Positions 464 to 47,882 are shown, numbered from the stretch's first letter. The stretch is DNA of 64,000 bases from Macrostomum hystrix (GCA_950097015.1 CATNEN010000030.1:310001-374000); one strand, 5' to 3'. Notes: generated from the letters alone by a model not told the origin. Numbers and translations are program-made.

Positions 464-3400
464 GTGTCCGTGGACGAAGGTCGCAAGATGACCGAGCTGT
501 CAGTGACCGAGTCGGAGTTTTACTCGAACGTACAGCGCGGCCTGACGGTGGCCAATCCCTGGACTTACGTTGTGGTCCGCGAGAGCTCCTTCCGGGCTAA
601 TCTGTTTGACGCCGGTTTAAAAATTGTCAACGGCTCCAGTGACGTGTTCGTTAATAAAACCAATTTCCATGGCAACGAACGCGCCGGACTCAACATCACC
701 ACGGCTAGCGGCCTGCGAATTGTCAACGCCAGCACCTTCCAGTATCAGCAGGGCTTCGGCCTGGACGTTTGGCATCAGTACGAGAACCAGACCAGATTCG
801 GCACGCAAGGCTATCCTAGGCAGACGGAGGTGTTTACCTCCAACTTCAGCTGGAATGTTGAGGCCGCTGTCAGGTGAGTGATTGCTCAAACTTTTGTAGC
901 ATTCTGTGATAGCTCTGGGTATAGTTCTGATAGTTCTGGGTCATTAACAAGGAATAGTTCTGGGTCCTAAACAAGGAATAGTTCTGGGTCATAAACAAGG
1001 AATAGTTCTGGGTAATAAACAAGGAATAGTTATGGGTCATTAACAAGGAAGTTATGGGTCATGAGCAAGAAATAGTTCTGGGTCATAAATAAGGAATAGT
1101 TATGGGTCCTTAACAAGGAATAGTTCTGGGTCATAAACAAGGAATAGTTCTGGGTCATAAACAAGGAATAGTCCTGGGTCCTTAACAAGGAATAGTCCTG
1201 GGTCCTTAACAAGGAATAGTTCTGGGTCATTAACAAAGAATAGTTCTGGGTCATTAACAAGGAATAGTTCTGGGTCATTAACAAGGAATAGTTCTGGGTC
1301 ATTAACAAGGAATAGTTCTGGGTCATTAACAAGGAATAGTTATGGGTCATGAGCAAGAAACAGTTCTGGGTCATAAATAAGGAATAGTTATGGGTCCTTA
1401 ACAAGGAATAGTTATGGGTCATTAACAAGGAATAGTTCTGGATCATTAACAAGGAATAGTTCTGGGTCATTAACAAGGAATAGTTCTGGATCATTAACAA
1501 GGAATAGTTCTGGGTCATTAACAAGGAATAGTTCTGGGTCATGAGCAAGAAACAGTTCTGGGTCATAAATAAGGAATAGTTATGGGTCCTTAACAAGGAA
1601 TAGTTATGGGTCCTTAACAAGGAATAGTTATGGGTCCTTAACAAGGAATAGTTATGGGTCCTTAACAAGGAATAGTTATGGGTCATTAACAAGGAATAGT
1701 TCTGGGTCATTAACAAGGAATAGTTCTGGGTCATTAACAAGGAATAGTTCTGGGTCATTAACAAGGAATAGTTCTGGGTCATAAGCAAGGAATAGTTCTG
1801 GGTCATAAGCAAGGAATAGTTCTGGGTCATGAATTGCAAATGCTCAGCACGCAATCACTCTCCCACGTGACCTCAGATTCTACAACTCGTGCGACACTCA
1901 CAACATCGTGGTGAACAACAGCGACTTCCGTCAGAACCAGCGCCAGGCCATCATGGCATTCTCCTGCCTGTACAGCCCGCGCGGCGTCACCAACTTCACC
2001 GTAGCATTCAGCCAGTTCACGGAAAATGTGCGCAATTCAATAGAAGTGGCGCCAATGCTGAACATGATTGGCCGGTTGGCTAACAACACATTTGAGCAGC
2101 ACAATCGGTCTGTTGTACTCATCGATAACGGCATCGATTTTGTTCAGCAAAGAATTTACGCCTCAATGTCAGTGAAATATGCCGTTGAGTACAATATATT
2201 TCAAAACAATAGCGGCTATTTTGTGCTCAACGCTCGCCTGCTACTCAACAGTGTTGTGCAGAGTATCAGTATTATGTATAACAAATTTCTCGACAATGTC
2301 ATCAAGAAGGCACCGGGATTTCTGAACCCAAGGAGCAGCGTACAGGCTGTGGTCATTCTTAGCTCGGATCTGAACCAACTGGCGTTCTGTCGGAACTACA
2401 TCAACAATAGCCAGTCAGATTATGACATTGGCACGCATCTGATGTCGCCAATGTTGTACATTAATGCCACGCTAAATTTCTGGGGCACGCCCACCGATCT
2501 GAAAGTTGGCACCTGGGATAGCATGGCACCGTTGGTGTTCAATCGACTGTTTGATAAGATTGCCAGGTAAGGCTCTAGGAGTCTGCTGATTCTAAATGAA
2601 ATATTATTGTCGTTTAAATATTTTTCTTTTTCTAGAAATTTTTTACTAAACTTTTCTTGTTCTTGCTATCGTTCTTGTATAAAAGACCTTAATAATTAAA
2701 CCTACCAGTAATCCGGATAAAGACATTTTTACCAATATTACCATTTTATGTAGTCAAAACTATTGCTAACAGCTAAGTAGATATACACTAATCTACTAAA
2801 TGTACTTTTGAAGTAACTAAAAACGGCCCTTTTAGGGGTCAACTAAAACTCGCCCAATTTGAACAGTCCGGACTCTGTTGCTTGTAAATTAGAAGCTTTC
2901 TAGCATTTCATCTGTTTTAGATAATTTTAACTACTGCTAACAGCCAAGTAGACCAATCAAAGCGTAATTTTATGACGTTATTGATTATCAGAAAACGGCC
3001 CTTTTAAGGGTCCATACATCGTCGAAGATTTTATGCGTTGTATTTGAACGCCTAATTTAGTCGACTGTCTGAAGCTTGTAAATTAGACATATGAATTAGC
3101 CAAAAAGAGTGCGAAAGGGTTAAAATAATAAGTGTTTCCTTTATTGGCGCTATATTTTCAGGCTTATTGCTAAGCTTAGTACACGTCAGTGTTAGTTCTT
3201 ATTCTAGATAAATAAATAATCAATATATTTCAGATACACACTGGCCCAGGTTAAATACTGGCCCGTACTGAAAGAGCGCCTGCTAAACACGGACAAGAAC
3301 ACTTTCGACACGCCGGAGTATATCTACAAATTCCGAGAGGGCACCTCAACCGAGATTGGCGGCCCGATTCTGGACGATTTCATTAGCGTAGTCCAGTTGG

Positions 3401-6400
3401 AGTCCAGAGTGTTTAGGGTGAGGCAATCTGTCATATTGGTAAAAGTAGGCAAATGAACGATCAAATTCAATTCAATTTGCATTAAAATGTTGCGCAGGTG
3501 TCTCGCGATATTTTCATCCCAATGCGCAAGAAGCTCATTATCGAGCCTGGCGCTCGCCTCGAATTCGACAACTCTGTCGGCATCTTCATCGAAGGCTCCC
3601 TGGTTGTTGGCGGCAACGCCATCCAGCCCGTCACCTTCACCATGGGCCCGGAGAAGTACATCGGGAACCTGAACATGAGCTCATCTGCCAACGGAACTGC
3701 CAACAGCACGGATCCCAACGTCACCATTCGGCTAGTCGATGGCAGCAGTTTCACCGAGGGCCGCTTAGAGATTCGCGTCAACGGCGTCTGGGGCACCGTC
3801 TGCGATCGCGACTTTGAACTAGCCGAAGCCAACATCGCCTGCAACATGCTGGGCATGACGGCTCATCCTGCCGACTGGCAGATCCTGCCCGGCGAGCACC
3901 AGCCAGGTCCTGCCTCCATGCCCATCCTGCGCTCCGGCATCCAGTGCCAGCCCTGGGATCTGGACATTCGCGCCTGCCCGGCAGACGGGCCAGCAGATCA
4001 CGACTGCGACCACAGCCGGGATGTACACATCCGCTGCAAGCGGAAGGCCTGGGCCGGACTGCGCTTCACAGCCTCCAACGATCTCAGCACCGTCAACTAT
4101 TTGAATGTGGACTCTGGCGGCATGCTGGACTATTTCCGGATGTACTATTCACCTGGCGTGCAGGTAAGCGAAAATTTTTGAAACTTTTTTGCAAGCCTGT
4201 ACCGTGTCATGTGAGGGAGGCGTTAAGTGGTTGGCGTCCTTCTCTCGCGCCAATCATCTCTTGTTTGTTGACTCTTACCTTGACTGGCCCTTCCCTTCCC
4301 AACTCCAGGTTGACTACAACAAGCACCTGTTTCAAAACATTCGCGTCTCCAACTGTATGTCGCACGGTTTCGTCATTCTGCACAATGAACTATTTCGCGA
4401 CAATCGGCTTACAGACAGCCAGCTGACTGACAATCTGGGCAACGGGGTCCTGATCCGCAGCCCACTGGTCGGCCTGACCGCCTGCAACATGTCCGGCAAT
4501 CGGGGCTCCGGATTCGAGTACAATCCCGGCTTCACGGAGCAGGAGGCCTACGATTTTCGTTCTTCATTCCCGCCGGTGCGCAAGACTATGCTCACAAACC
4601 TGGCCGCGGCCCAGCCCTTCGAAGTGATTGGCATACAGTCCAGCGACACGGACTACCTGGTCACTAATCCCAGCGTGTCATCTGTGACTGGCACGTACAG
4701 AGTGGAGCTCCGCTCAGGCCAGCCGGAGCAGCGGCTCATCATCTCCGTGGTGGACTTCAACCCGAATCCAAACTGGGAGCGGGTCACAGTCTACGATGTA
4801 CGCGCACAGTCTGTTAATGTGAACTCGCCAAAGTGGCGAATCCCTGAGGACCTGGCGCTGTTCCCAGCCGTGTCCTCCGGTTCCTCGGTCACTGTGGAGT
4901 TTAAAGTCAACGGCCCGGTGACGGATCGGCTGGCGCTCATCGTCCAGTCCATGGACATGCGCGGCATGCCCGATGCCAACGTGCCGGATTATTATCCACC
5001 TACGAAGCTGCTGCTTGGCAACTGCCAGATGGTCGGCAACGTCAAGGGTATCTCGATTACACATTATAACGACGGCACGGACGATCAGGGCTCCAAGGTG
5101 TACATTAGGCGTCGCTTCGAGACCATTGAAATGACCAACCTGAACATTTCCAACAATCGCGACTTTGGACTTCACGTGCCCAGCGTTAGTCCGTTTCAGG
5201 TGAGACATTTCTGCGGTATTCTATCGACTGCCTGGGGTGTAGTTAAGTGGGCCTGCATCGGTGTAACTCAAATTCTGTTATTTTGCATACCCGCCTTGTA
5301 GAACGACTTATTCGCGCCGAGCTATGCCGAGGTGGACGAAGGCTCCTCGCGCATCGCTCGCATCCAGTACCGCATCAACAGCTGCCAGTTCACCGGCAAT
5401 GGTCAAGCCGTGTTCTCGGAGCACAATCACGTGCAGTACGCCAACAACCTGTGGAACTACACCATCACCGACTGTCTGTTCTCCGGCAACACTCGCGACG
5501 GTTTCGACATCGATTTCCCGTTTGTTAGCAAGAAATTCGACTGGCGCTACGAAGAGGACCTCACGCACTATGTCACGTTTCGAAACAACCGCTTCACAGC
5601 CAACACCAACACCAGCATGGTGATTCGTGGCTACAATGCCGACATTAAAATCACCAACAGCGAGTTCACTAACAATCGTTGCCTAAGGCGGAGTCTAATC
5701 CGATTAGCCGGCATGGAGAAGAGAGTCGTCATCACTGCCAACACAATCACTGGCAATGTGAACTGCACCGCTCTAGTCGACTTTGACATCATCTCGCAGA
5801 CTGAATTCTCCACGTTGGTCCCGGCCAGCGTCACTAGGAACACGATTCGCGGAAACACCTGTCCGCCATCCACTGACCCAGACGGTGTGCTTGACTCGTC
5901 AACACCTACTTGCTCGGCCGTTAGCGTTCAAGGCATTCAGGACGTGCTAGTGCAACGAAACATCATCAGCAATGGCTACCAAATTGAGCTGATCGCTGGC
6001 TTGTTGTCCACCAGCATCATCAACAACTTCAACTGCACCGAGAACTACTGGGGCACCGTCGACATCGAAACGATCCGATCACGCATCTTTGACTACGACA
6101 GCTGGAACAATTTTGCTGTAGCCGTCTTTAGCCGCTTCCTGCTGACCGAGTCGCTGGACGCCGCCGTCAGCTCGGCTGTCGTGCCGCCAAGGAGCATCGA
6201 TTTCAGCCGGCCATTTGGTGGTCGCATCCAGCAGAACACGCGCTTGCCTTGGCGCCGAACGCCCTACCTAGTGAATCGCGACATCACCGTGATGCCCGGT
6301 GTGACGCTCAGCATTGATGCCGGAGTTGAGCTGCAGTTTTATCCCAATGTTGGCATCCTGGTCTTGGGCAGAATCGACGCAACGGGCTCCTTTGCTTCAC

Positions 6401-9400
6401 CCATCAGCATGCGCCCAGTTGTCAAAGCGAACGCCGCCGCGGCTGCTGGACGCAGACGGCGACGTCGAGAGACTACGACAAGCTCAACTGCCGAGTACTA
6501 TAACAAGTACACGGAGCCTCAGCTGAAAAATGGCGCCGTGAAAGTGTCCCTGGAGAAGAACGGCATTCGACTGGTGGCCGGTCGCATTGACAACGAAGGA
6601 TTCGTGCAGTTCTACAACAGCACCGCGGCCAGGTAGGCTTGCTATGATCAAAAGCCAGATCGTTACAAGTCTCACTATGGTCTTGAATTTGAACCATTTG
6701 ACTTTTTAAATAAAATGGCAAAAGTAAGGTGTGTTGGCTGAAAATTAAAAATAATTGATTACACCTGCCCCGATCGTGCCCCGATCGGGCCAGGTGTGCA
6801 GCCGACAGCACAGCCGCGGCTATTGCGCGGCGCATCTGAAGGTTGCAAACGGCTGTTCAGTCTATGGACTGGGGGGACGCCACACCCACCCTCAATTACC
6901 CCCAGCTAATGCTGGTACCCATTTAACAGCTGTGTGAACTGAAGCAATGCAATTTGAGCAATTCTAAAGGACACAAATTGTTCCAGTGGAGTAGGGATTC
7001 GAACCGCCACCGACCTTCAATTCGTGAATCCGACACTCTAGCGGCGCCAGCTTGGCTACGCTCGTACGAGTACAACCCCCACGTGAGATGAGTAACATGT
7101 GAAACTCTCTTAAACAAGATCCTTGAGCTCGAATCCGCACCTTAGGCCAAGGTAATGTCGTGCACTGCGGGATGATAAAAGATCAGGGTAGATGTTCCCA
7201 TTGTACACAAGTGTGAGTGTGTGTCTGCCTAACTTATTTGCTTATGTTGTCAGAGGTTAGCGGAAGGGGCACAATCGCCTTCTCGCTGGCTGTAATAAAA
7301 AGATAATTATTAATAATCTTTTAAATTCACCTTAATGGTGCAAAGTTTTCTGATCAAATCACCATACTCAACTTAACCCAGATGGGACATCGCGTGCGAC
7401 AATCAATTCTCCGAGGAGGTTGGTCGTGTTGTCTGTCGCGAACTCGGTGTCGAGACATTTAATGTAATTGTTCGCGAGACCTATCTGTACGATCACTATG
7501 TGTACGGCTTCGACAACCAGTTTGTGCGCAAGTACTTCTGGATGCGCACTTACAACTGCAAGGGCACCGAGCGGAGCCGGGCAGAGTGCACCGAACGGCT
7601 CAACTACGACTCTGTGATGTGCGGCCAGCGTCGTGGCTACATATTCCTTCGCTGCGGCCAGTCCAACCTTCAGCCCGGTGAGACCTACTGGGGCAGCATC
7701 CGGGTGGCCCACCCGGCAGTGGAACAGTCAAGTCCCATCTCCGGGGAGCCGTCGCAGTTTCGCTACGTCAACATTTATGGGGCCGGTGTACTTCACCGGC
7801 AAAAGGTGGCGGCCATCCAGACTACCTATCAGTACCCTCTGTTCGACACCGTCACAATTACCAACTGCGCTAGTGACGGTTACAAAATCATTGCGCCCAG
7901 GCGGTTTGTGCGCGTTGGCAATACAACTGTGCGCGACAACTTGGGCACCGGCTACTCTATGATTGTTCTCAACGGCGACTCGGCCGACCCGGCAACCACC
8001 CCGCTGGTGAGCTTCAATCCGCTAGTCGAGAGCAGCATTCCCTACAGTCTGGTTGGCCTGGTGGACATCTGCGATATGCGCAAGGACATGATTGTGGTGG
8101 ACCGGCTGTTGGTCTTCTACAAGTACTCTTACGAGACCAGAGCCTGCACTAAACTGTTCCGCTCGCAGGTCAGCGCCAAGCGGGTGGCCCTTCGGTTCCT
8201 GCAGATTCAACTCTACTACGATCCGTTCAGTAAAAACTCAATAGAATTGTTCAACGGCGATCGATTTAACACTACGGAACTGCTAGCCGAGATCACAGCC
8301 GCCAACATGACCAACCCGAACGACCGTCGGAGGACGTTTAGAACCACAGCAGCCTACGACACTCTGGGCATTCACCTTCACGCCTCAAGTGCCGCTCCGA
8401 CTAACGGCTTCATTGCCGAGGTTGTCACGCTCCCGCTTAGCCCGGACAAGACCTACCCAGACCTGAACAACTTCATGGAGCACTATGTGCGACAGTCGGT
8501 CTTCACTAACAACCAGGAGGGCGGCGTTCACTACAGCGGCGTTGGCGAGATTAATCCCGACTTTGTGGCTCACTTTAACCAGTTTGAGAGGAACGGATTA
8601 GACATTCTCAACTTGACCAGCCGGCCTGTGCTCTTTGCTCAGATGCAGAACGGTCGCTATCTGGATGTGTCAAACAACCTTGTGAGTGCATATAGTGTCT
8701 GTGCGTGCATAACTTAACTTATTTATCAAAGGAAAACAATTAACTAATTTTTAGCATGTTTGTAGATTCAGAATCTTAAAGAACATGTTCCATTTTCTCG
8801 GCTGAATATACTTTTTTTAATACAATATACATAATACTACTAAGAGTAGTACTTTGTAGTTTCTCAGAAACCATGAAATCACTATTAAAAAACTTCACCA
8901 CACGCAGGTGTTGAACAACTTCGGCGGCATGCAATTCGACATGTGGTGCACCGGCTTGTCCAAATCGGCCAAATCTAACATCACGAACAATGCCATCGTT
9001 CGGAACACCCACGGCGGCGGCCTGTGGATTAGCGGAAATCACTACAATCTGTTCAAGGTCACCGACAATTTCTTCGAATCGAATATGGCCGAGATGCGAG
9101 ATCTAGTCAGCATTCAAGGTGTGTTAATGAAACCGTTCGCTAGGAACTATTTCCATCGCAACGTGGCTGGCTACATCATGAACGCGTCCGGGCCCGAGGA
9201 TCTATCCACAATGAACGATTTCTCCTGGAACGGGTTCTACCAGAATCAGGCCCTTAACTGGACTCGCCGATCCACCGTTTTTCTTGGCAGCTCCAAGCAT
9301 CAGTTCCGCAATAACTATTTCCGCAATTTGGCTAATAACTTCGAGATCGCCACTGGCAACATGTCGATCATCTACTATGCTAACATTGACACTAACGGCA

Positions 9401-10962
9401 ACTGCCTGGCCGAACCCTGGGCCTGCAAAGAGGGCTGGGTCAAACGGCTCGATCTTTACAAGTGCGTCTGCTATCGGCTGGACAAAATCGACGCCCGCTA
9501 CAACTGGTGGGGCGAGCCGTACAGTTTCTACGCACCCGGCCGGCTGTGGGATAACGCCGATGATCCCTACATTATCAGCATTGACTACAGCAACTTTTAC
9601 ACTGATAATAGTTCTGTGCTGGAGAGTCCACAGTGTCCGCCAACGTTCAATGTCTCTAACAGAAATTGCTATTGGTGGTTCGGCGCTCCGCTTAGCTACG
9701 ATCGCGCTAAACTATTCTGTCAGAATGAAATCAGCGGCGTTATGGGCGATAGTCGCGACAGCATCCAGTTTATGACTAACCTTATGGCTAGCAGCCAGAA
9801 CAACTACGAATGGATCAATCGGTATGCTTGGACCACGCGCGGTTGGGTCTACAGCGAGCAGCCTTTCCCAGCCGCCTGTCCAGTTGTTCGCAACAACTGG
9901 CTCGAAGGCTTCCCCTGCGACACGCCGACCTCGTTTTTCTGCCAGGTCTCACCGTCTGGCACTCTGCGCACCATGGAGACGGCTGTCATGGCCTCCATTG
10001 GCTCAATCCTAGCGCTGTTCCTCCTGCTGGCCCTAGTGCTGCTGATCCTGTGGGCCTACAAGTCGCGCCAGCGTCAGAAAGCTCGCATGGTTCGACGGGA
10101 GAACTATCGCGCCACGATGAAATCGTCTCGCAGTGCTGGCGTGCTTGGTGGCACCGCTGTCACCCAGCAGGAGTACCTGAGCGGCGGCTCGCGGAGCAGT
10201 ACCGGGCTGGGATTCTATACCCTGCAGAGCGGCGTACCGATGTCAGATTACCGACCGCCAGCTGACGCGCAGTCGGTTGTGACCGGCTACACTGGCGCCG
10301 GTTTCAACAGCCGGCGCGAGTTGGACCGCGGCATCCGTCTAGCGGACTCCGTGGACACGCTGGATCGGGCCAAAGTCGAGGAGCTGCAGAGCGCCTCTTC
10401 CGCTGCTAGCTCGGACGCTTCGTCGTCTGTTTATCGACCCTCTCTGGGTGTCTCTCTCGGCGCTCCGCCAACCACACTTAGCGGCGGTCGCCGATTTATG
10501 ATCGAGAACCAGATTCCGGAGGCCGAGACTCCTCAACTGAGCGGCGCCGCTGCGGCCGCCCCACCCCGCATCCGCATGGGAACCGGCGGCGTAGGCGGCG
10601 GTCCGCCCGATCACATGCGCCGCAATAAGCAGACGCTGTCCCGCCCGGCCACCAACCCGATGCAGACCCGCCATCCACAAGCTGCACCGCCCAATGTGTC
10701 ATCACAGCAGCAGTACCAGCCTCCTTCATCCTTGAGCGGTCGTCAGCAGCGTGGTGATTTTGACTCTGAGTTTGAAGACGACGATGATCAGGAAGGCAAG
10801 ACTTCTAGCGACGAGTTGACACCGACCTCGGTGCCGCAGCAGCAGCAACAGCAGCAGCAGCAGCAGCCGCGCCCGGCCTACCTGCATCAGCCGCGTCGCA
10901 GCCTCGGTCGTACGGTTGACGACACCAAACGGTTCGCCTCGGCCGGAGAGTCAGATATTTAA
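464..10962 (+). CDS. bark: Protein bark beetle / Anakonda homolog (tricellular septate-junction type I membrane protein), 5' end lies upstream of the window
   Basis: Phase-consistent GT-AG exons: 464-873, 1877-2566, 3234-3417, 3498-4163, 4309-5199, 5302-6632, 7382-8681, 8908-10962 (TAA). Asn-rich beta-helix repeats (F..N..N), SRCR domains (IRLVDGSSFTEGRLEIRVNGVWGTVCD ~3725; RLVAGRIDNEGFVQF|RWDIACD ~6570-7400), CUB-like segments, recurring NYWG/NFWG motifs, C-type lectin (CPPTFNVSNRNCYW ~9635), TM (IGSILALFLLLALVLLILWAY ~10000), low-complexity tail ending ESDI. This repeated architecture is characteristic of the Bark/Anakonda family. Confidence 0.9.
925..1830. repeat. 24-bp minisatellite (TTAACAAGGAATAGTTCTGGGTCA)n filling a bark intron
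   Basis: Seen directly; occupies ~90% of intron 874-1876 and explains the spurious MTQNYSLL ORF. Confidence 0.97.
6745..7065 (-). mobile_element. tRNA-derived CORE-like SINE family B, copy 1
   Basis: Minus strand: B-box GGTTCGAATCC (6995-7005), then GTGTCCTTTAG...TTGCTTCAGTTCACACAGCTGTTAAATGGGTACC resembling the CORE domain (MIR: GCCTCAGTTTCCTCATCTGTAAAATGGG). AT-rich tail. Second copy at ~58970-59160. Confidence 0.75.
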
Positions 10963-41521: not shown

Positions 41522-41959
41522 ATGTTCGCCCCTCAAGGCAGCATTAGCTGCTGCCCAGTATTAATGCAGGCTGATCAGGAGGGCATGATCTGGAAGGACT
41601 GCATTGAACGATGGAAGCGCAGCCGCGAGAAATGGCGCCAGGAGACCGTTAAGCTTCAGCAGCAGTTGTGCGACATGACTCGAAGTGCCTACCACTGGCG
41701 TAAGCAGACCGCCACGACTCATAGCGAGCTGCATAAGATACAAAAGGCTCTGATTAGCTGGCGCACAGAGGCCACTAAATGCCGCGAGACATCGCGTCAA
41801 TGGAAATCGGAAACCATCCGCTGGCGAGAGCAGGCCCTTAAGTGGAAGAACCAATGCTCTGAGCTCATGGAGCGCAAGGACGATCAACAGATTGCTCTAC
41901 TTTGCCGAGCTAGGCAACGGTACTGCGCTGAGATGAGCTACAAATACGGCTGCAATTGA
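41522..41959 (+). CDS. Small coiled-coil protein with Trp at a fixed heptad position (may be a terminal exon)
   Basis: 145-aa ORF in non-repetitive DNA. All 8 Trp (24, 31, 38, 59, 80, 94, 101, 108) are congruent mod 7 and each is followed by K/R. AATAAA at ~42397. Confidence 0.65.
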   Translation: MFAPQGSISCCPVLMQADQEGMIWKDCIERWKRSREKWRQETVKLQQQLCDMTRSAYHWRKQTATTHSELHKIQKALISWRTEATKCRETSRQWKSETIRWREQALKWKNQCSELMERKDDQQIALLCRARQRYCAEMSYKYGCN

Positions 41960-42813
41960 CCGGTCACGGTTGAGTACATGCGCGCTAATAGATACATGTA
42001 GTGTTCTTGCATTGTGTGTCACCTTTATCACGAGAAAGACATGAAAGACCTTCCGAGCGTAAAGTCACACAGTGGCACAGTGAAGCTGATGTGGCAATCG
42101 CTTTGACCAACCTGTGGCAATAGTACAAGGCACGGTAGATTACCGCACCTGTTTATTTCGCGAACTTCTTCCATAGATCGAGAATTCAAGCGAGCAGCTT
42201 TGTTTTAAATATGTACATCTGTTATGCAATTATGTCGCAAATAACTCTACCTACAGAACTATCAGCGAAACTATAATATTTTCAATTGAAAATTTCATAG
42301 AAACAGAATCGCATACCAGAATTAATTCTTCAACTAATAAGTTCTCGAAAAGGCCCTGTAATGGTTTTTTTACCTGGGCCAATGCAAGCCATGCTTAATA
42401 AAAGTAGCGCGCTGAATGACGCACTTTCTACATTTCATTTGTAACTTTAACTAACTGTAAACTTTAACAACTTTTTAACAACTGCATGACAGACTACAAC
42501 ATGTTGCTGTCTGGTGCATAGCTCGTCTAAAGAGTAGTAAAATATACTGACCTACAGTGACCTACACTGAATTTATATAGAGTGAAACACGACTTGCATT
42601 TTGCAATTATAAGACCTTCTCGTTACGGTAAAATTATTTCTCGGAGGCAGATTTTTGTCACAAAACATAGCGGCTCAGGTTTGTATAAATTCGTATAAAT
42701 ACGCTTGTAAAAGTACAGTGCGTAGAAACACTTTGAAACTTCTCCAAACATCTGAAGCAAATAATAAGTTAAGCCCTGGAAAGTGCCTAAATAGAATAAT
42801 AACCTCCAGGTGC

Positions 42814-45800
42814 CTAGACGGCGAAGTTCATCATCTCCAACTCGGATTGGGGCTGTGGTACTTGCTGAGGCGGCGGCGGCACTGACTGCAGGAACAACTG
42901 CGGCGGCGGAGGCGGTCGTGGAAGCGCTCGGACTTTTTCCGGCTCTTGTGTCCCTTCGCTCATTGGTTCATCGTAGTCTGGCTCAGGTGACGCTCTGCCG
43001 CATGCTTTGCTCTTAGAGATGCAGTTGAGAAGCAGGACAACCAGGAGGCCAAGACAGACTCCGAGAAGACCCAGAAGACCCCAGAGGCCTTGCAGCTGAA
43101 TGGACGACCGAGTTGTGGTGCCAGTGGAGGGTGCGCCGAGAACTGTTGAGCTGTCAGGTGTCGCCACGCAGGTGAGACTGGTGCATGCGGCTTGGGTAGA
43201 GTCCCGGCTAGTGCACCAGCTGATAGCGGACCCGGCTCGTTCTTGGCTGACAATGGACTCGACCGAATCCGCGAATGAAGTGCTCACGCCGTTGTAGTTG
43301 CCTATCTGAATAGTATATTGCACTTTTATTTTGTATGCTCCGAAGTTTTAAAAAGCAAACGAGAAAACGAAATCAGAAATAACAAAATAGTAAAAATTTA
43401 GATTTTGCAAAACATCCATGCCAACCTTAACGTATTGAAATCCTTCCGCCGTTCGTTTGCGATACTGCCATACAGACACGGTCAGCCTGCCCATTCGGTT
43501 ATCGAATATTTTCTGGTAGGTCCAGGCTGTGCCTTCAAAATTACCAGCAAAGCGCTGTGGCTTACCGGCATTCTCAACGCCGTACATGATCAGATTGGCT
43601 CGACTGGCCTGGCCCAAGTTTTGAGCGTGGTAGAATGCCGGACACACTGGCTCACTGTTTTCAGTTGAACACATGTAGGCGACTGCTGTGAGTGTTCCGA
43701 GAACCAATGTTTCAGTGGCCTGAACCACTAGCGGCGTGCGAGACTCCAAGCTGCTGATGGCTCCCCGGCTGGCCAGAAGGGTATCTGTGCATGGCACACT
43801 ATAGAGCGGATTACGCACAAACGCGGTAGTCAGGTAGCACTGGTTGATGCTTTCAAAGTGGAGCCGATCCCACTGACTCAGCTGGCTGGCGTACAGCGGC
43901 ATTGCGGCAGCCCACTGCCTCTCGTAGGACAAGAACGCTGGCGAATCAGCTGCCTCAAACTGCATGGACAATGCACCAATTCCAACGTTGTTGCGACCCG
44001 TGTAGGCTGCTTCGGATGTGCCCACTGACTGCGTCGTCAAAAAGGTCACCTTGCCGATGTCCGTCTCCGCTTGGTCATAGCTGAGGAACGCCTGAAGGTT
44101 GCCCAGATCGGCCAGGAAGGGAACGAAGCGAGCCTTGGACTCACGCAGGCGAGACATCACAACTTGCTTGCACGAGCTGTCAAGAATTTTGCAGTCATAT
44201 AGGATTAGCTGACCAATGCAGAGCCCAGCATCAGATGCTCGTTGCAACAACTCGTTCTTCAGCGACGTTCCAAAGTCAGTGTTCACATAGACCGCAACGA
44301 TGTAGCTTACCTTTAAATATTTTAATGTATCGAGCATAACTTGAACGACAGTGCTCGTTGAAACACCAGTGCGCAAAACATTTGGATACTCAGCAACATT
44401 GCTCAGCTCTGCTGCCGTTGATCCATAGGTTATTAGAGGCAGGTTATACGTCTTGAGCAACTCGGCGGCCTGAGCAGTCTGTGAGCTGCCGTGCGCTCCA
44501 ACGAAGCCAACCACCTTGGTGAAGTTGAAGCCCGGCACGACCAGCCAGACTGCCGTCCAGCAGGCTGCCGAGTCGCCGCACGGTGCAGCTGGGTGAGTAG
44601 CAGGTGTCCAGCACAACGTAGCCCCAGCGCAGCCTCTTGGCGCGCCTGTCGTGAACTCTCTGAAGCAAGTCTCTCACTCCTATAAGGAACTGCTGATCGA
44701 CCTGCGATGTGTTGAAGCCCTTCGGCATTGGATTTCCCTGGCTGAGTGCGTCCACCATCTCGACAACGAACTTGAAAGCCATCGCGAACTCGTAGCCGCC
44801 AACATTTTGCGTCCTGAAAGTGCCATCGCTGCAGTTGAATGCGTCATTTCCAGCAAAGAAGACGGGCACCAGAGCGCCCAGGTAGATGTCGCCCTCCTTG
44901 AACTGAATGAACTGCTTATCCGACTCGCTCACACATTCTGGACAGCTGGCGGGGCACTCTGACGCGAAGCTGCTCGTCAGGGTCGGGAAGATGTCGGGGT
45001 TGCCGCTGGTCAGCTGGTAGAATTTGCTCACGCCAGTCGCATTGAACTCATACGTCTGCGCTGCCGTTCCCGCCTGCTTGAGGGCCAGCTCGCCGAGCTT
45101 CTCCAGCGAGTAGCTGGTCCCGCGCAGCTGGCTCTGGTAGATCTTCACGATGGGCTGCCAGAAGCCGCGGGAGGTGTGCTGCAGGCCCCTGTCCATGGAG
45201 TAGGTGGTGAAGCCGGCCCTGACAAAGGAGTTCAGCAATGTGAACTTTGTCCTCAGTGATGCCAGAGTGACCGTCTTCTGCCGCAGGCTTTGCACGTCGG
45301 CGAGCGAGCCGAGGCTCGGGACTCCGTCAGCAAGAAGCAGAGCGAGGCTGAGAGCTTGGAAGTCGCAGCGGAGGGCCAGCAAGTAGCAGAGGCTACTGGA
45401 ATCGGACCAGACGCACTGGCTGCTGGTCGACTGCTTGAGCCAGTTCAGCCGGCCGTGGGTGGCCTGCAGCTCGGAGAACCGGCCCATGGAAGCAGCATCG
45501 GCAGTGAGGTTGGCGAACAGCGTCCCCAGCTCATCAGTGGCGGGTTCCGGGTCCAGAATTCCCGGGAAGATGAAGACGGTGCCGAGGCCGAGGTTCTTTC
45601 GCCTGGTCGTGTCGGACATCCGGTGGAAGCTGCTGAAGGCGTCGCCAACCAGCACGAGCTGGTAGCGCTTCTCCGAGTCAGCGAAGGCGCTGTCGCCTCC
45701 TGACACGAGGTCCCACAGGCGCAGGAAAGCTGCGCCCGAGCCAGCGAAGACGATCGTGAAGCGGGGCAGCCGTTTGCTGGAGTACACAAGGTCCTTCAGC

Positions 45801-46914
45801 GCCCGGACAGCGTCCGTAGCGTTCTCGCTGTTGAAGCTCAGCAGCAGCGGGAAGCAGATCCTGCGGTCCGTGCGCCCCAGCGACAGCAGCTGCTGTGACA
45901 GGCGGGCTGAGCCCGGCTCCGCCTCCCACAGCAGGCCGACGTAGCTCCAGTTGCTCAGCAGCATGAAGCTGTACGTGGCCTATGGCAGTGAGGCGACCAG
46001 AATGATCAAGTTTAAAAGTTAAAAGTTTTTATTCTCTAAATAATAATGGTCAACCTCAACAATCTGGCACGATTCTCACATTGGCTATTTCACTGATGGC
46101 CGGCACTGCAGTGAGCTGTCCCGGCTGGTCCGTCCGGAGACCGCCTCGCGCAAACCGGCCAGACTCGGACATGTAGTCAGCAGAGGCGGGCAGGCGGCCG
46201 GCAACTGCTGGTTGAAAGGCGTACAATGTCCGCGGACTGTCCGAGCAGACGGGAGTAGGTGGTGGCTGCGTCTAACTCTTTGAATTTGCTCGGTGATAGG
46301 AACACTGAAGATGATAGTTTATTACGTATAATCGGTCAGCTTTCATCAGTCCTATTTTCTATGAAGGACTGCTCGCCGGGGTCATGTACTCACCGAATGT
46401 CTGGTTCGTCCGTGTCCTGATCTGGTTGATTATGTCAGACACCAGGCTACAAGTTTCCAGTTTTGCGCTGCCATTGTCTGTAAGAGTTTGGTAATGAGTG
46501 ATGTAATGCCATTTTCATTTACAAGTAGGTAGTGTAGAACTGAATCTAAATCAACCAATGTTTTCACCTCCAGTGGCCTGGAACAGCATGATGTCCAGCA
46601 CGGCCTCACTAAAGTGCAGACTCAAATCCGGATCTAGGCCTGATGTGCACACACCGGCAGACGATATGTTCAGATTGCTTGTGTGATGATACCACGACTC
46701 AGCGGCTGTCGAGTAGAAAAAAGGCATGGTTGAAAGTGAAAAGCTTAAAAGCTTTTTTATAGCAATAATCTTGCTTTTTTTAAAAGACAGACAGCTTTCA
46801 AGAATGAAATTTCTTACCATTTGACACAGAAATCAACAGTAGCAGCATCCAGCAGCATCCTATCCGACTTCTCGTAGGACCGCATCGGGAAGCGTAATCG
46901 TTGACACCTGCCAT
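42814..46914 (-). CDS. Secreted-type receptor: signal peptide + two mGluR/class C-type Venus flytrap domains + single TM + Pro-rich tail (~1195 aa; two +1 frameshifts in this sequence)
   Basis: Exons 46914-46818, 46705-46568, 46477-46394, 46304-46080, 45979-43426, 43305-42814 (3590 nt = 3n+2). Signal peptide MAGV...CCWMLLLLISVSNA. VFT2 motifs: EGDIYLGALVPV, GYEFAMAFKFVVEMVD, WGYVVLDTC, KVVGFVGAHGSS, LPLITYGSTAAELS..EYPNVLRT, YVK|IGNYNG. One TM: LWGLLGLLGVCLGLLVVLLLNCI, then stop after NFAV. Confidence 0.82.
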
Positions 46915-47882
46915 CAGGTGAGGACTCGGCTCAAACTGGCCCTTGAGCTGTAATACACTGTAGCACCTATGGCTAATACTGCTTTGTATTTACTGCTCAA
47001 AGTCGTAGCTCTCTTTAGAAAAACTGCCACGCAGGTAGGATTTTAGCATCCTTCTTTACCGCCAGTGCACATGCCTTATTAGAGTTTGACAGTGTGCATT
47101 TTTGTTTAAATCAGCCCCTAATGAGAGTACAGAACGCGTCCAGCCCACACTGTAAGCTGTTCATTCTCTCCTATGCCGTCCACTTACCACTCAGCGGGCT
47201 AGCAAGCAAACAATTAAAAGCTGTTTTCGGGCAGGAGCATTCGTGAGTACAAAAAGCGAGACCTATTTTTTTATTATCGCTCTCAACTTAGCCGGATGTT
47301 TTGCTACTACTGAGCCTATTGGAGCGAAGCACGCAAAACACGGGTGTCGATTGTTGTAAAACTACCATTTTCCTCTTCTGTAAAACATAAGCTTTCTTTT
47401 ATCTTGTCGTCAAAATGTACAATTGTAATATTACCATTAAAATAAATATATTATTTTGAATATTTATGTAGGTAAAGCCACACTCGTCAGATAGTATTTT
47501 ATTTTAAAAAAGACAAAAACTGTATGATAAGAAATTTTCTGTTTTTGCTTTACGTCACACGTCGAGGCATAAATTTGAATCATCAGTCTATATACATGGG
47601 AACCAACAGATTACTATAGTATGCTACTACAAGTAGTTAGACTAATAGGACTGCTGATGCAATGAGGCAGCATTGAGTTTTCAGTTGACGAGGTAAAAAC
47701 ACGATTGCAATAGGCGGTCAGTTATTGTTTTTGTTTACAAGCTAAAACATCGGACGAGTTGGAAGCTGTCTGTGGAAATTAATATCGAATATGATTTCTC
47801 GCGCTAAGCGAGTCTAGAAATTCATATATTCAAATACTAAAGTCCATCACAATTTACTGAATTTGTTTGACTCTAAACAGTA

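Follow-up and report, generated by a model that had tools for sequence, protein, structure and literature searches.

A tandem-flytrap, single-pass membrane protein of Macrostomum hystrix and its relatives in gastropods

Venus flytrap (VFT) domains are the ligand sensors of the metabotropic glutamate (mGluR), calcium-sensing (CaSR), taste, GABA-B and natriuretic peptide receptors, and the class C flytraps act as dimers. Can such a sensor be built into a receptor that has neither a seven-transmembrane (7TM) core nor an enzyme domain? The question is raised by a gene found in a 64,000-nucleotide stretch of the flatworm Macrostomum hystrix (GCA_950097015.1 CATNEN010000030.1:310001-374000), which is called the window here and from whose first letter all positions are counted. 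The coding sequence lies on the minus strand, with an ATG at 46914 and a stop codon at 42816-42814, and its six exons encode a type I membrane protein of 1195 amino acids (aa). From the N-terminus the protein consists of a signal peptide, a first flytrap (VFT1), an ECPASCPEC linker, a second flytrap (VFT2), a stub with three cysteines, one transmembrane (TM) helix and a tail of 67 aa. This arrangement of two flytraps, a single helix and a short tail is real. The best explanation for it, to which a probability of about 0.42 was assigned, is a dimeric small-molecule sensor that would not be a G-protein-coupled receptor (GPCR) and would signal through a tail tyrosine and SH2-type adaptors.

An intact, transcribed and constrained gene

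Three long minus-strand open reading frames (ORFs) with receptor motifs were found at 45964-44444, 44616-43348 and 43323-42814. Of these, two overlap in different frames, and in the assembled window the frame of exon 4 has to be corrected as well. Public sequencing runs mapped over window positions 41900-47800 were used, one of genomic DNA that is colinear with the window (X1) and two that are RNA-like (X2 and X3). Single extra letters were located at 44543 and 46223, neither of them in a homopolymer. Since both letters were missing at full depth from all three runs, and since the coding sequence without them is fully open (3588 nt, zero internal stops, 1195 codons plus the stop), the frame breaks are almost certainly assembly errors and not lesions. 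Similar false frameshifts may be present in other genes of the same assembly.

Five GT..AG introns were evidenced by spliced contigs of X2 and X3 (46817-46706, 46567-46478, 46393-46305, 46078-45979 and 43425-43306). Exon 1 (46818-47028) carries the 5' untranslated region, from about 47028, and the coding positions 46914-46818 (aa 1-32). A signal-peptide-like N-terminus could be read there by eye, as the hydrophobic CCWMLLLLISV is followed by SNA/AE. Exon 2 (46568-46705, aa 33-78) starts VFT1, which is continued by exon 3 (46394-46477, aa 79-106) and by exon 4 (46079-46304, aa 107-181), where the extra letter 46223 lies. The 2.55-kb exon 5 (43426-45978, aa 182-1032), with the extra letter 44543, encodes the remaining VFT1, the linker and almost all of VFT2. 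Exon 6 (42599-43305) supplies the end of VFT2, the three-cysteine stub, the TM helix, the tail, the stop codon and a 3' untranslated region of about 200 nt. The corresponding joints were 46818/46705, 46568/46477, 46394/46304, 46079/45978 and 43426/43305.

The RNA contigs began at 47028 (X2) and 47004 (X3) and ended at 42618 (X2) and 42599 (X3), about 200 nt past the stop codon, and no splice joint beyond exon 6 was present in them. An earlier reading, made from the sequence alone, had placed the gene at these coordinates and on this strand, with the same start and stop codons and a frame-corrected product of 1195 aa. The ORFs and transcripts agree with it on the coordinates, and the spliced contigs together with the removal of the two run-absent letters agree with it on the length. 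Every motif that it quoted (ECPASCPEC, GAHGSS, TYGST, the three-cysteine stub, the single helix and the tail ending NFAV) was recovered in the translation. It had recommended that transcripts be checked for a splice to a 7TM or cyclase exon beyond exon 6, and no such splice appeared in the RNA contigs.

A syntenic orthologue of the gene is present in Macrostomum lignano (PAA84059.1, 1182 aa), with 69% identity over the full length. The two loci share a VWC/VWD gene upstream and, on the other strand downstream, a small gene and a dynamin-like gene, and the end of the gene is the same in M. lignano. The ratio of nonsynonymous to synonymous substitution rates (dN/dS) between the orthologues was 0.16 overall (pN 0.16, pS 0.58; Nei-Gojobori method, exons 5 and 6). 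By region it was 0.08 for the bulk of VFT2, 0.18 for the VFT1/linker core and 0.27 for the stub, TM helix and tail; as dS is above 1 these values are approximate, and the synonymous excess is nonetheless clear. The runs themselves contained 28 single-letter differences, 14 synonymous and 14 nonsynonymous, some of which mix paralogues. By a rough estimate about one in four would be synonymous by chance, so that synonymous changes look enriched. Purifying selection on the gene is supported by these comparisons of sequences, and the untranscribed locus with relaxed dN/dS that the earlier reading had foreseen as its own refutation is at odds with the spliced RNA contigs and with the value of 0.16.

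A convergent gene was observed next to the 3' end. It lies on the plus strand at 41522-42612, contains a Trp/Arg/Lys-rich coiled-coil ORF of 145 aa and is transcribed. Its polyadenylation site, at about 42609-42612, is some 10-20 nt from the end of the flytrap transcript. A gene of 156 aa occupies the equivalent position in M. lignano.

Two flytraps, one helix and a short tail

VFT2 (43297-44932 on the minus strand, intron 5 included; aa 531-1035) is an mGluR-type ANF_receptor domain. It was recognized in Pfam as ANF_receptor (PF01094, E 6.6e-24) and as Peripla_BP_6 (E 2.6e-10), and its best solved relatives by sequence were mGluR4, mGluR7 and mGluR1, with E values of about 1e-13.

The identity of VFT1 (44963-46705, exons 2-5; aa ~33-520) had to be examined by other means. 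No Pfam domain was found in the 506-aa VFT1/linker piece, and nothing below E 1.8 was obtained when a profile of the flatworm VFT1 was compared with PDB sequences. In an hhalign comparison the flatworm VFT1 matched the mollusc VFT modules with 91% probability (E 9e-7) over 112 colinear columns in the first half of lobe 2. When residues 25-522 of the orthologue were submitted alone to a language-model search, only ANF_receptor clusters were returned (score 0.93). The AlphaFold model of VFT1 had a mean predicted local distance difference test score (pLDDT) of 49, with a confident beta-alpha-beta core at residues ~141-290. The top 50 Foldseek matches of this model were all class C flytraps (E about 1e-7), and about 180 VFT1 residues were superposed by VIA-align on mGluR lobe 2 and the C-terminal strands (Z about 17, root-mean-square deviation 2.7-3.0 Å). 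A full-length model of the orthologue, with a mean pLDDT of 44, added only the TM helix and a second beta-alpha-beta region. Of these models only VFT1's central lobe and some portions of VFT2 can be used, and the packing of the domains is unreadable from either. The assignment of VFT1 as a degenerate flytrap is supported by these profile comparisons and predicted structures. The sequence-only reading had described a double flytrap with a highly diverged first copy. The divergence is evident from the missing Pfam and PDB sequence matches and from the loss of all five ligand-pocket positions (see below). The doubling is secure as regards VFT2 and supported by the further tests as regards VFT1, structurally beyond its first ~130 residues.

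The two flytraps are joined by the linker ECPASCPEC (44933-44959; aa 522-530, with CPASCPEC at 523-530), which has the form CxnCxxC and whose three cysteines are invariant in the alignment of flatworm and gastropod proteins. The membrane-proximal stub WCTSRDSTQAACTSLTC (43168-43218, aa 1062-1078) also holds three cysteines. They are invariant in an alignment of 10 flatworm and gastropod C-terminal regions, and one of them reaches 90% or more in the full-length alignment. The Gly-rich TM helix, with GxxG spacing (43018-43086, aa 1106-1128), is the sole Kyte-Doolittle peak of 1.8 or more in the whole protein (2.72) and is followed by SKSK; in the structural model of the orthologue a helix was found at residues 1097-1126. 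All 11 N-glycosylation sequons and a Ser/Thr-rich stalk are located in the ectodomain. The cytoplasmic tail (42817-43017) consists of 67 aa, with the motif EPDYDEP (42964-42984), a Pro-rich stretch and the end ...EMMNFAV.

None of the output domains of known flytrap receptors was detected. The nine-cysteine NCD3G domain, which in class C GPCRs separates flytrap and membrane, was not matched by Pfam in the window pieces (E threshold 1) or in the orthologue and paralogues (E threshold 0.1), the three-cysteine stub being all that was seen. Across the window pieces and the proteins of M. lignano there was likewise no match to 7tm_3 or to a kinase or guanylyl cyclase domain, and the window protein has one hydrophobic segment only. 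The tail contains no Pfam domain. The protein shares the flytrap with class C GPCRs and lacks their NCD3G and 7tm_3 domains. The kinase-homology and cyclase domains of receptor guanylyl cyclases (NPR-A/B type) and the cytoplasmic tyrosine kinase domain of Venus kinase receptors (VKR) are equally absent. The earlier statement that neither a 7TM core nor an enzyme domain is encoded was therefore confirmed by Pfam, by hydrophobicity and by the 3' end of the transcripts.

Relatives, ligand pocket and conversion tract

An exhaustive HMMER search with the 506-aa exon-5 (VFT1/linker) piece against 1.84 billion representatives returned 7 proteins at E up to 0.001, five of them from Macrostomum. The best matches were M. 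lignano proteins, and the distant ones included gastropod proteins. Three word-indexed protein searches yielded close relatives only, and the alignment-based one nothing beyond M. lignano, so the phyletic range is under-sampled.

ANF_receptor was recognized by Pfam in two stretches of the limpet protein KAK6173633.1 (Patella caerulea, 1134 aa), which also has a single TM helix, and this organization is shared by the gastropod proteins whose length is 1060-1170 aa. Patella and Haliotis contain at least nine further proteins of the kind (720-1170 aa), several of them encoded side by side on one chromosome, and in public databases the snail relatives are annotated as "uncharacterised" or "mGluR-like". 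The gastropod proteins (Patella caerulea SNE40_017046-017050, P. vulgata LOC126829910 and others, Haliotis rubra LOC124274715) display the same order of parts, the same invariant cysteines and the same juxtamembrane tyrosine as the window protein. Their identity to it is only about 20%; besides, both snail flytraps retain a five-residue pocket signature of which nothing is left in the flatworm VFT1. These snail proteins are unstudied. A look-up in a protein atlas with the Patella protein led to a mostly molluscan cluster of 105 members, with a representative of 1283 aa that has ANF_receptor and no 7tm_3 listed, which is taken as a lead only.

Repeated flytraps were also observed in a bivalve. 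The Sinanodonta woodiana protein KAL3856574.1 (2798 aa, an unverified gene prediction) contains five ANF_receptor modules with the same CxnCxxC connector, and differs from the window protein by this number and by a 7tm_3 domain that follows the modules. Four connectors, no internal TM helix and no signal peptide were seen in it; provided that the gene has been predicted correctly, it is a class C GPCR with five flytraps. Mollusc flytraps that precede another flytrap or, in the snails, the single TM helix end in CxnCxxC. By sequence, the flatworm ECPASCPEC is the same element, and in the full-length alignment of flatworm and snail proteins invariant cysteines were found in VFT1, the connector, VFT2 and the stub. 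In a maximum-likelihood tree of 21 modules, VFT1-type and VFT2-type modules were split with 90/99 support, and bivalve modules 2-5 fell on the VFT2 side. Because the modules group by position across phyla, the tandem arrangement most likely predates the split of flatworms and molluscs, as judged from a tree that is unrooted, with no single-VFT class C outgroup.

A set of spiralian tandem-VFT single-pass proteins was defined here from database proteins, and the window protein shows the features of this set. It has the two flytraps, with the N-terminal ~130 aa of VFT1 not confidently modelled, the CxnCxxC connector after VFT1, the three pre-membrane cysteines, one TM helix near the C-terminus and a short tail in which a juxtamembrane tyrosine (Tyr1143) aligns with the snail EPHYAEP. 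A third paralogue in M. lignano, P0008 (PAA66742.1, 1499 aa), was observed to be extended at the N-terminus by ~340 aa, with matches to fibronectin type III that stay below threshold and with a further hydrophobic segment. The cause may be a fusion of gene models, or the extra module may be genuine.

The literature on metazoan tandem or multiple flytraps and on the M. lignano gene identifiers gave nothing relevant, the matches for tandem VFTs being the bacterial BvgS/EvgS and trypanosome cyclases. The sequence comparisons indicate a real family that has members in gastropods and is akin to class C GPCRs with several VFTs, and no paper on this build was found. The suggestion of the sequence-only reading that the gene could represent an undescribed receptor class holds as far as publications go. 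It does not hold in the sense of a one-off, as gastropod members were already in public databases, unannotated.

The tail is poorly conserved, with the exceptions of the tyrosine 13-20 residues past the TM helix and of an internal motif, SE-x-EMM-x-FA, present in both orthologues. The tyrosine aligns in an EPxYxxP-like context in 8 of 10 flatworm and gastropod tails. The context is EPDYDEP in the window protein, EPEYDVP in M. lignano, EPHYAEP in Patella and YSYP or YNYP in other Patella paralogues. Two further tail features were considered and rejected: NFAV as a PDZ ligand, because the orthologue runs 14 residues beyond the same motif, and the Pro-rich stretch as a conserved SH3/WW ligand, because it is not conserved in the orthologue.

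The ligand pocket was evaluated at the five mGluR positions that hold the alpha-amino-acid moiety, mapped through the VFT2-mGluR4 alignment and the family alignment. In mGluR1 numbering these are Ser165, Thr188, Asp208, Tyr236 and Asp318. With one exception they are kept in both snail flytraps and in the paralogues P0010 and P0008, where the last position is D or E. In VFT2 of the window protein and its orthologue the equivalents are Ser679, Thr702, Thr722, Phe750 and Gln831, and in the flatworm VFT1 all five are lost. The change from D/Y/E to T/F/Q in VFT2 was seen in the window gene and its orthologue only. Measured against the signature of amino-acid-binding class C flytraps (S/T/D/Y/D-or-E), VFT2 retains two of the five residues and VFT1 none. 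It had been pointed out from the sequence that VFT2 keeps the Ser of GAHGSS and the Thr of TYGST. This is correct for Ser679 and Thr702 and incomplete, as two acidic residues are lost and the tyrosine is replaced by phenylalanine. Because the equivalents of Asp208, Tyr236 and Asp318 are replaced, a classical alpha-amino-acid ligand appears less likely for this copy than that account implied. Both species carry the same three changes in a strongly constrained domain, which favours a retuned pocket, or a subunit without a ligand, over decay.

A GC-rich tract that is near-identical to a paralogue was located at 44492-45951 (minus strand, aa ~192-677), spanning the end of VFT1, the connector and the start of VFT2. 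The DNA depth over it was 2-3.5 times that of the flanks, identical loose ends were found at both of its borders in X1, X2 and X3, and the GC content at third codon positions was 0.8-0.88 inside and 0.42-0.7 outside. The two M. lignano paralogues are on a single contig, inverted relative to each other and separated by ~185 kb. Their DNA similarity is confined to a homologous tract of 1556 bp with 94% identity (L001:10991-12542 and L002:7156-8707). The encoded proteins have an identity of 92-100% along the greater part of aa 170-690, falling to 75-85% in three windows of 40 residues, against 15-57% outside this stretch. When the tract is compared across the two species, its identity is only 76-78%. 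Because this is lower than the 94% between the M. lignano paralogues, the tract is being homogenised independently in each lineage; the pattern suggests that GC-biased gene conversion has recurred between boundaries that are conserved.

Elsewhere in the window, a very large plus-strand gene was observed at 464-10962, with beta-helix-like repeats, SRCR-like and C-type-lectin-like stretches, a single TM helix and a tail rich in Gln. Minisatellites of coding appearance are numerous at 1000-31000.

A possible sensor, its rivals and its meaning

Several known systems share parts of this design. With the class C GPCRs (mGluR, CaSR, T1R, GABA-B) the window protein shares homology of VFT2, and more weakly of VFT1, to their flytrap, including the Ser and Thr that hold the carboxylate. 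It differs in having two flytraps instead of one, three-cysteine connectors instead of NCD3G, and one TM helix with a 67-aa tail instead of 7tm_3. NPR-C/NPR3, which binds peptides, consists of one flytrap, one TM helix and a short tail that carries neither kinase nor cyclase. The resemblance is in the flytrap ectodomain, the one helix and the enzyme-free tail, but the flytrap of NPR-C is single and NPR-type, and the sequence kinship is limited to the ANF_receptor superfamily. Venus kinase receptors of flatworms and insects are single-pass and amino-acid-activated and carry a class-C-like flytrap (PMC4038586, PMC2680970). Their flytrap is single and is linked to an insulin-receptor-like tyrosine kinase domain, unlike the kinase-free window protein. 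SmGBP, a truncated Schistosoma mansoni mGluR, has no 7TM core, is membrane-associated and dimeric, and binds glutamate (PMC3206071). With 488 aa, it has one flytrap and no cysteine connector, C-terminal TM helix or tail, and it keeps the Arg/Ser/Thr/Tyr/Asp glutamate site. The statement made in advance of this analysis, that single-pass VFT proteins are normally guanylyl cyclases, leaves out NPR-C/NPR3, VKR (PMC4038586) and SmGBP (PMC3206071). Tandem flytraps before one TM segment occur in the bacterial sensor kinases BvgS/EvgS, where the membrane-proximal module drives the output (PMC4352136). Since those flytraps are of the bacterial periplasmic-binding-protein type and are followed by a cytoplasmic histidine kinase, the likeness is an analogy of design and not kinship.

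In the proposed dimeric sensor the working clamp would be VFT2, with VFT1 as a degenerate module for scaffolding or dimerisation. When VFT2 closes, the rigid cysteine connector and the TM helix would relay this to the tail. The juxtamembrane tyrosine there (EPxYxxP), in the only tail motif kept between flatworm and snail, might be phosphorylated by a separate kinase and so recruit SH2-type adaptors. This output is proposed because pY-x-x-P is a docking class of SH2 domains (Crk, Nck, Abl) and because the tyrosine motif is conserved. The ligand would probably be no standard amino acid, given that the Ser/Thr grip on the carboxylate is kept and the two acidic residues that hold the alpha-amino group are gone. 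Several observations weigh against this proposal. The first ~130 residues of VFT1 were modelled at a pLDDT below 50, and the alignment used for folding included genuine mollusc VFTs, which makes the structural match partly circular. The juxtamembrane tyrosine is missing from the paralogue P0010. PDZ or SH3 binding is a weak idea, since neither the Pro-rich stretch nor the placement of ...FAV at the C-terminus is conserved in the orthologue from M. lignano. Finally, the loss of the acidic pocket residues could equally mean a ligand-free subunit, as in GABA-B2.

That last point leads to the close second among the explanations, which is itself somewhat unlikely: an accessory or ligand-presenting subunit without an output of its own. 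It would pair, by way of its flytraps, with a 7TM partner or with a pocket-intact paralogue and tune or block its signalling, in the manner of the division between GABA-B1 and GABA-B2. The established dimeric nature of class C flytraps fits this, as does the coexistence of paralogues with an intact S/T/D/Y/E pocket and a copy with an altered one. In two species, moreover, conversion has kept a 1.46-kb core near-identical between paralogues, which would preserve a common interface, although conversion tracts can be neutral and GC-biased. A related multi-VFT 7TM protein exists (the Sinanodonta prediction) and the Gly-rich TM helix suits helix-helix packing, but a tail motif conserved across phyla is not obviously needed by a purely accessory protein. 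A clearance or decoy receptor like NPR-C, which would bind a small extracellular ligand and remove it by endocytosis without signalling, is improbable. Its plan of flytrap ectodomain, single helix and short enzyme-free tail is matched here, and an NPR3 cluster was among the nearest neighbours of the snail homologue in the language-model search (score 0.91). Nevertheless, the VFTs are mGluR-type and not NPR-type, no YxxPhi or dileucine endocytic motif is visible in the tail, and two flytraps with strict cysteine connectors exceed the needs of a sink.

Slightly more improbable still is a surface protein that serves adhesion or structure and whose flytraps have ceased to bind small ligands. In favour of it are the pocket positions lost in VFT1 (5/5) and VFT2 (3/5), the 11 sequons and the Ser/Thr-rich stalk; VFT2, however, is the most constrained part (dN/dS 0.08), and its altered pocket residues are identical in two species, so that it looks retuned and not decayed. 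The co-receptor, decoy and adhesion-type roles put forward by the sequence-only reading are conjectures. The idea of a pseudogene, an assembly chimera or a mis-modelled GPCR with 7TM exons elsewhere was prompted by the two frame breaks in the assembled window and by an abrupt change of composition at 44492. It is largely refuted and was rejected, its probability being very small. Both breaks are missing from one DNA and two RNA-like runs. The spliced transcripts reach from exon 1 to a 3' end near 42600 that adjoins the convergent neighbour. The M. lignano orthologue has the same end and synteny, with a dN/dS of 0.16. The composition jump is explained by the conversion tract, since this is present in M. 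lignano too.

A wider proposal goes beyond the window gene: an undescribed spiralian receptor class in which small-molecule binding would be turned into phosphotyrosine/adaptor signalling without a 7TM core or an enzyme, and in which conversion-matched paralogue subunits would form heterodimers with different pockets. It is regarded as doubtful, a little more so than the accessory subunit and less so than the clearance receptor.

The coupling of clamp closure to differing outputs is a central question for flytrap receptors as drug targets. A family with two clamps stacked on one helix and a short tail would provide a natural experiment on such coupling where both 7TM core and enzyme are missing, and it links single-pass forms to multi-flytrap GPCRs. 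How subunits have specialised can be approached through the conserved conversion tract and through the pocket changes that are specific to paralogues. As M. lignano is a laboratory model with established RNA interference and transgenesis, the function is directly testable. The gene represents a real but unexplored wiring of a familiar sensor domain, in a build, itself unstudied, that snails share.

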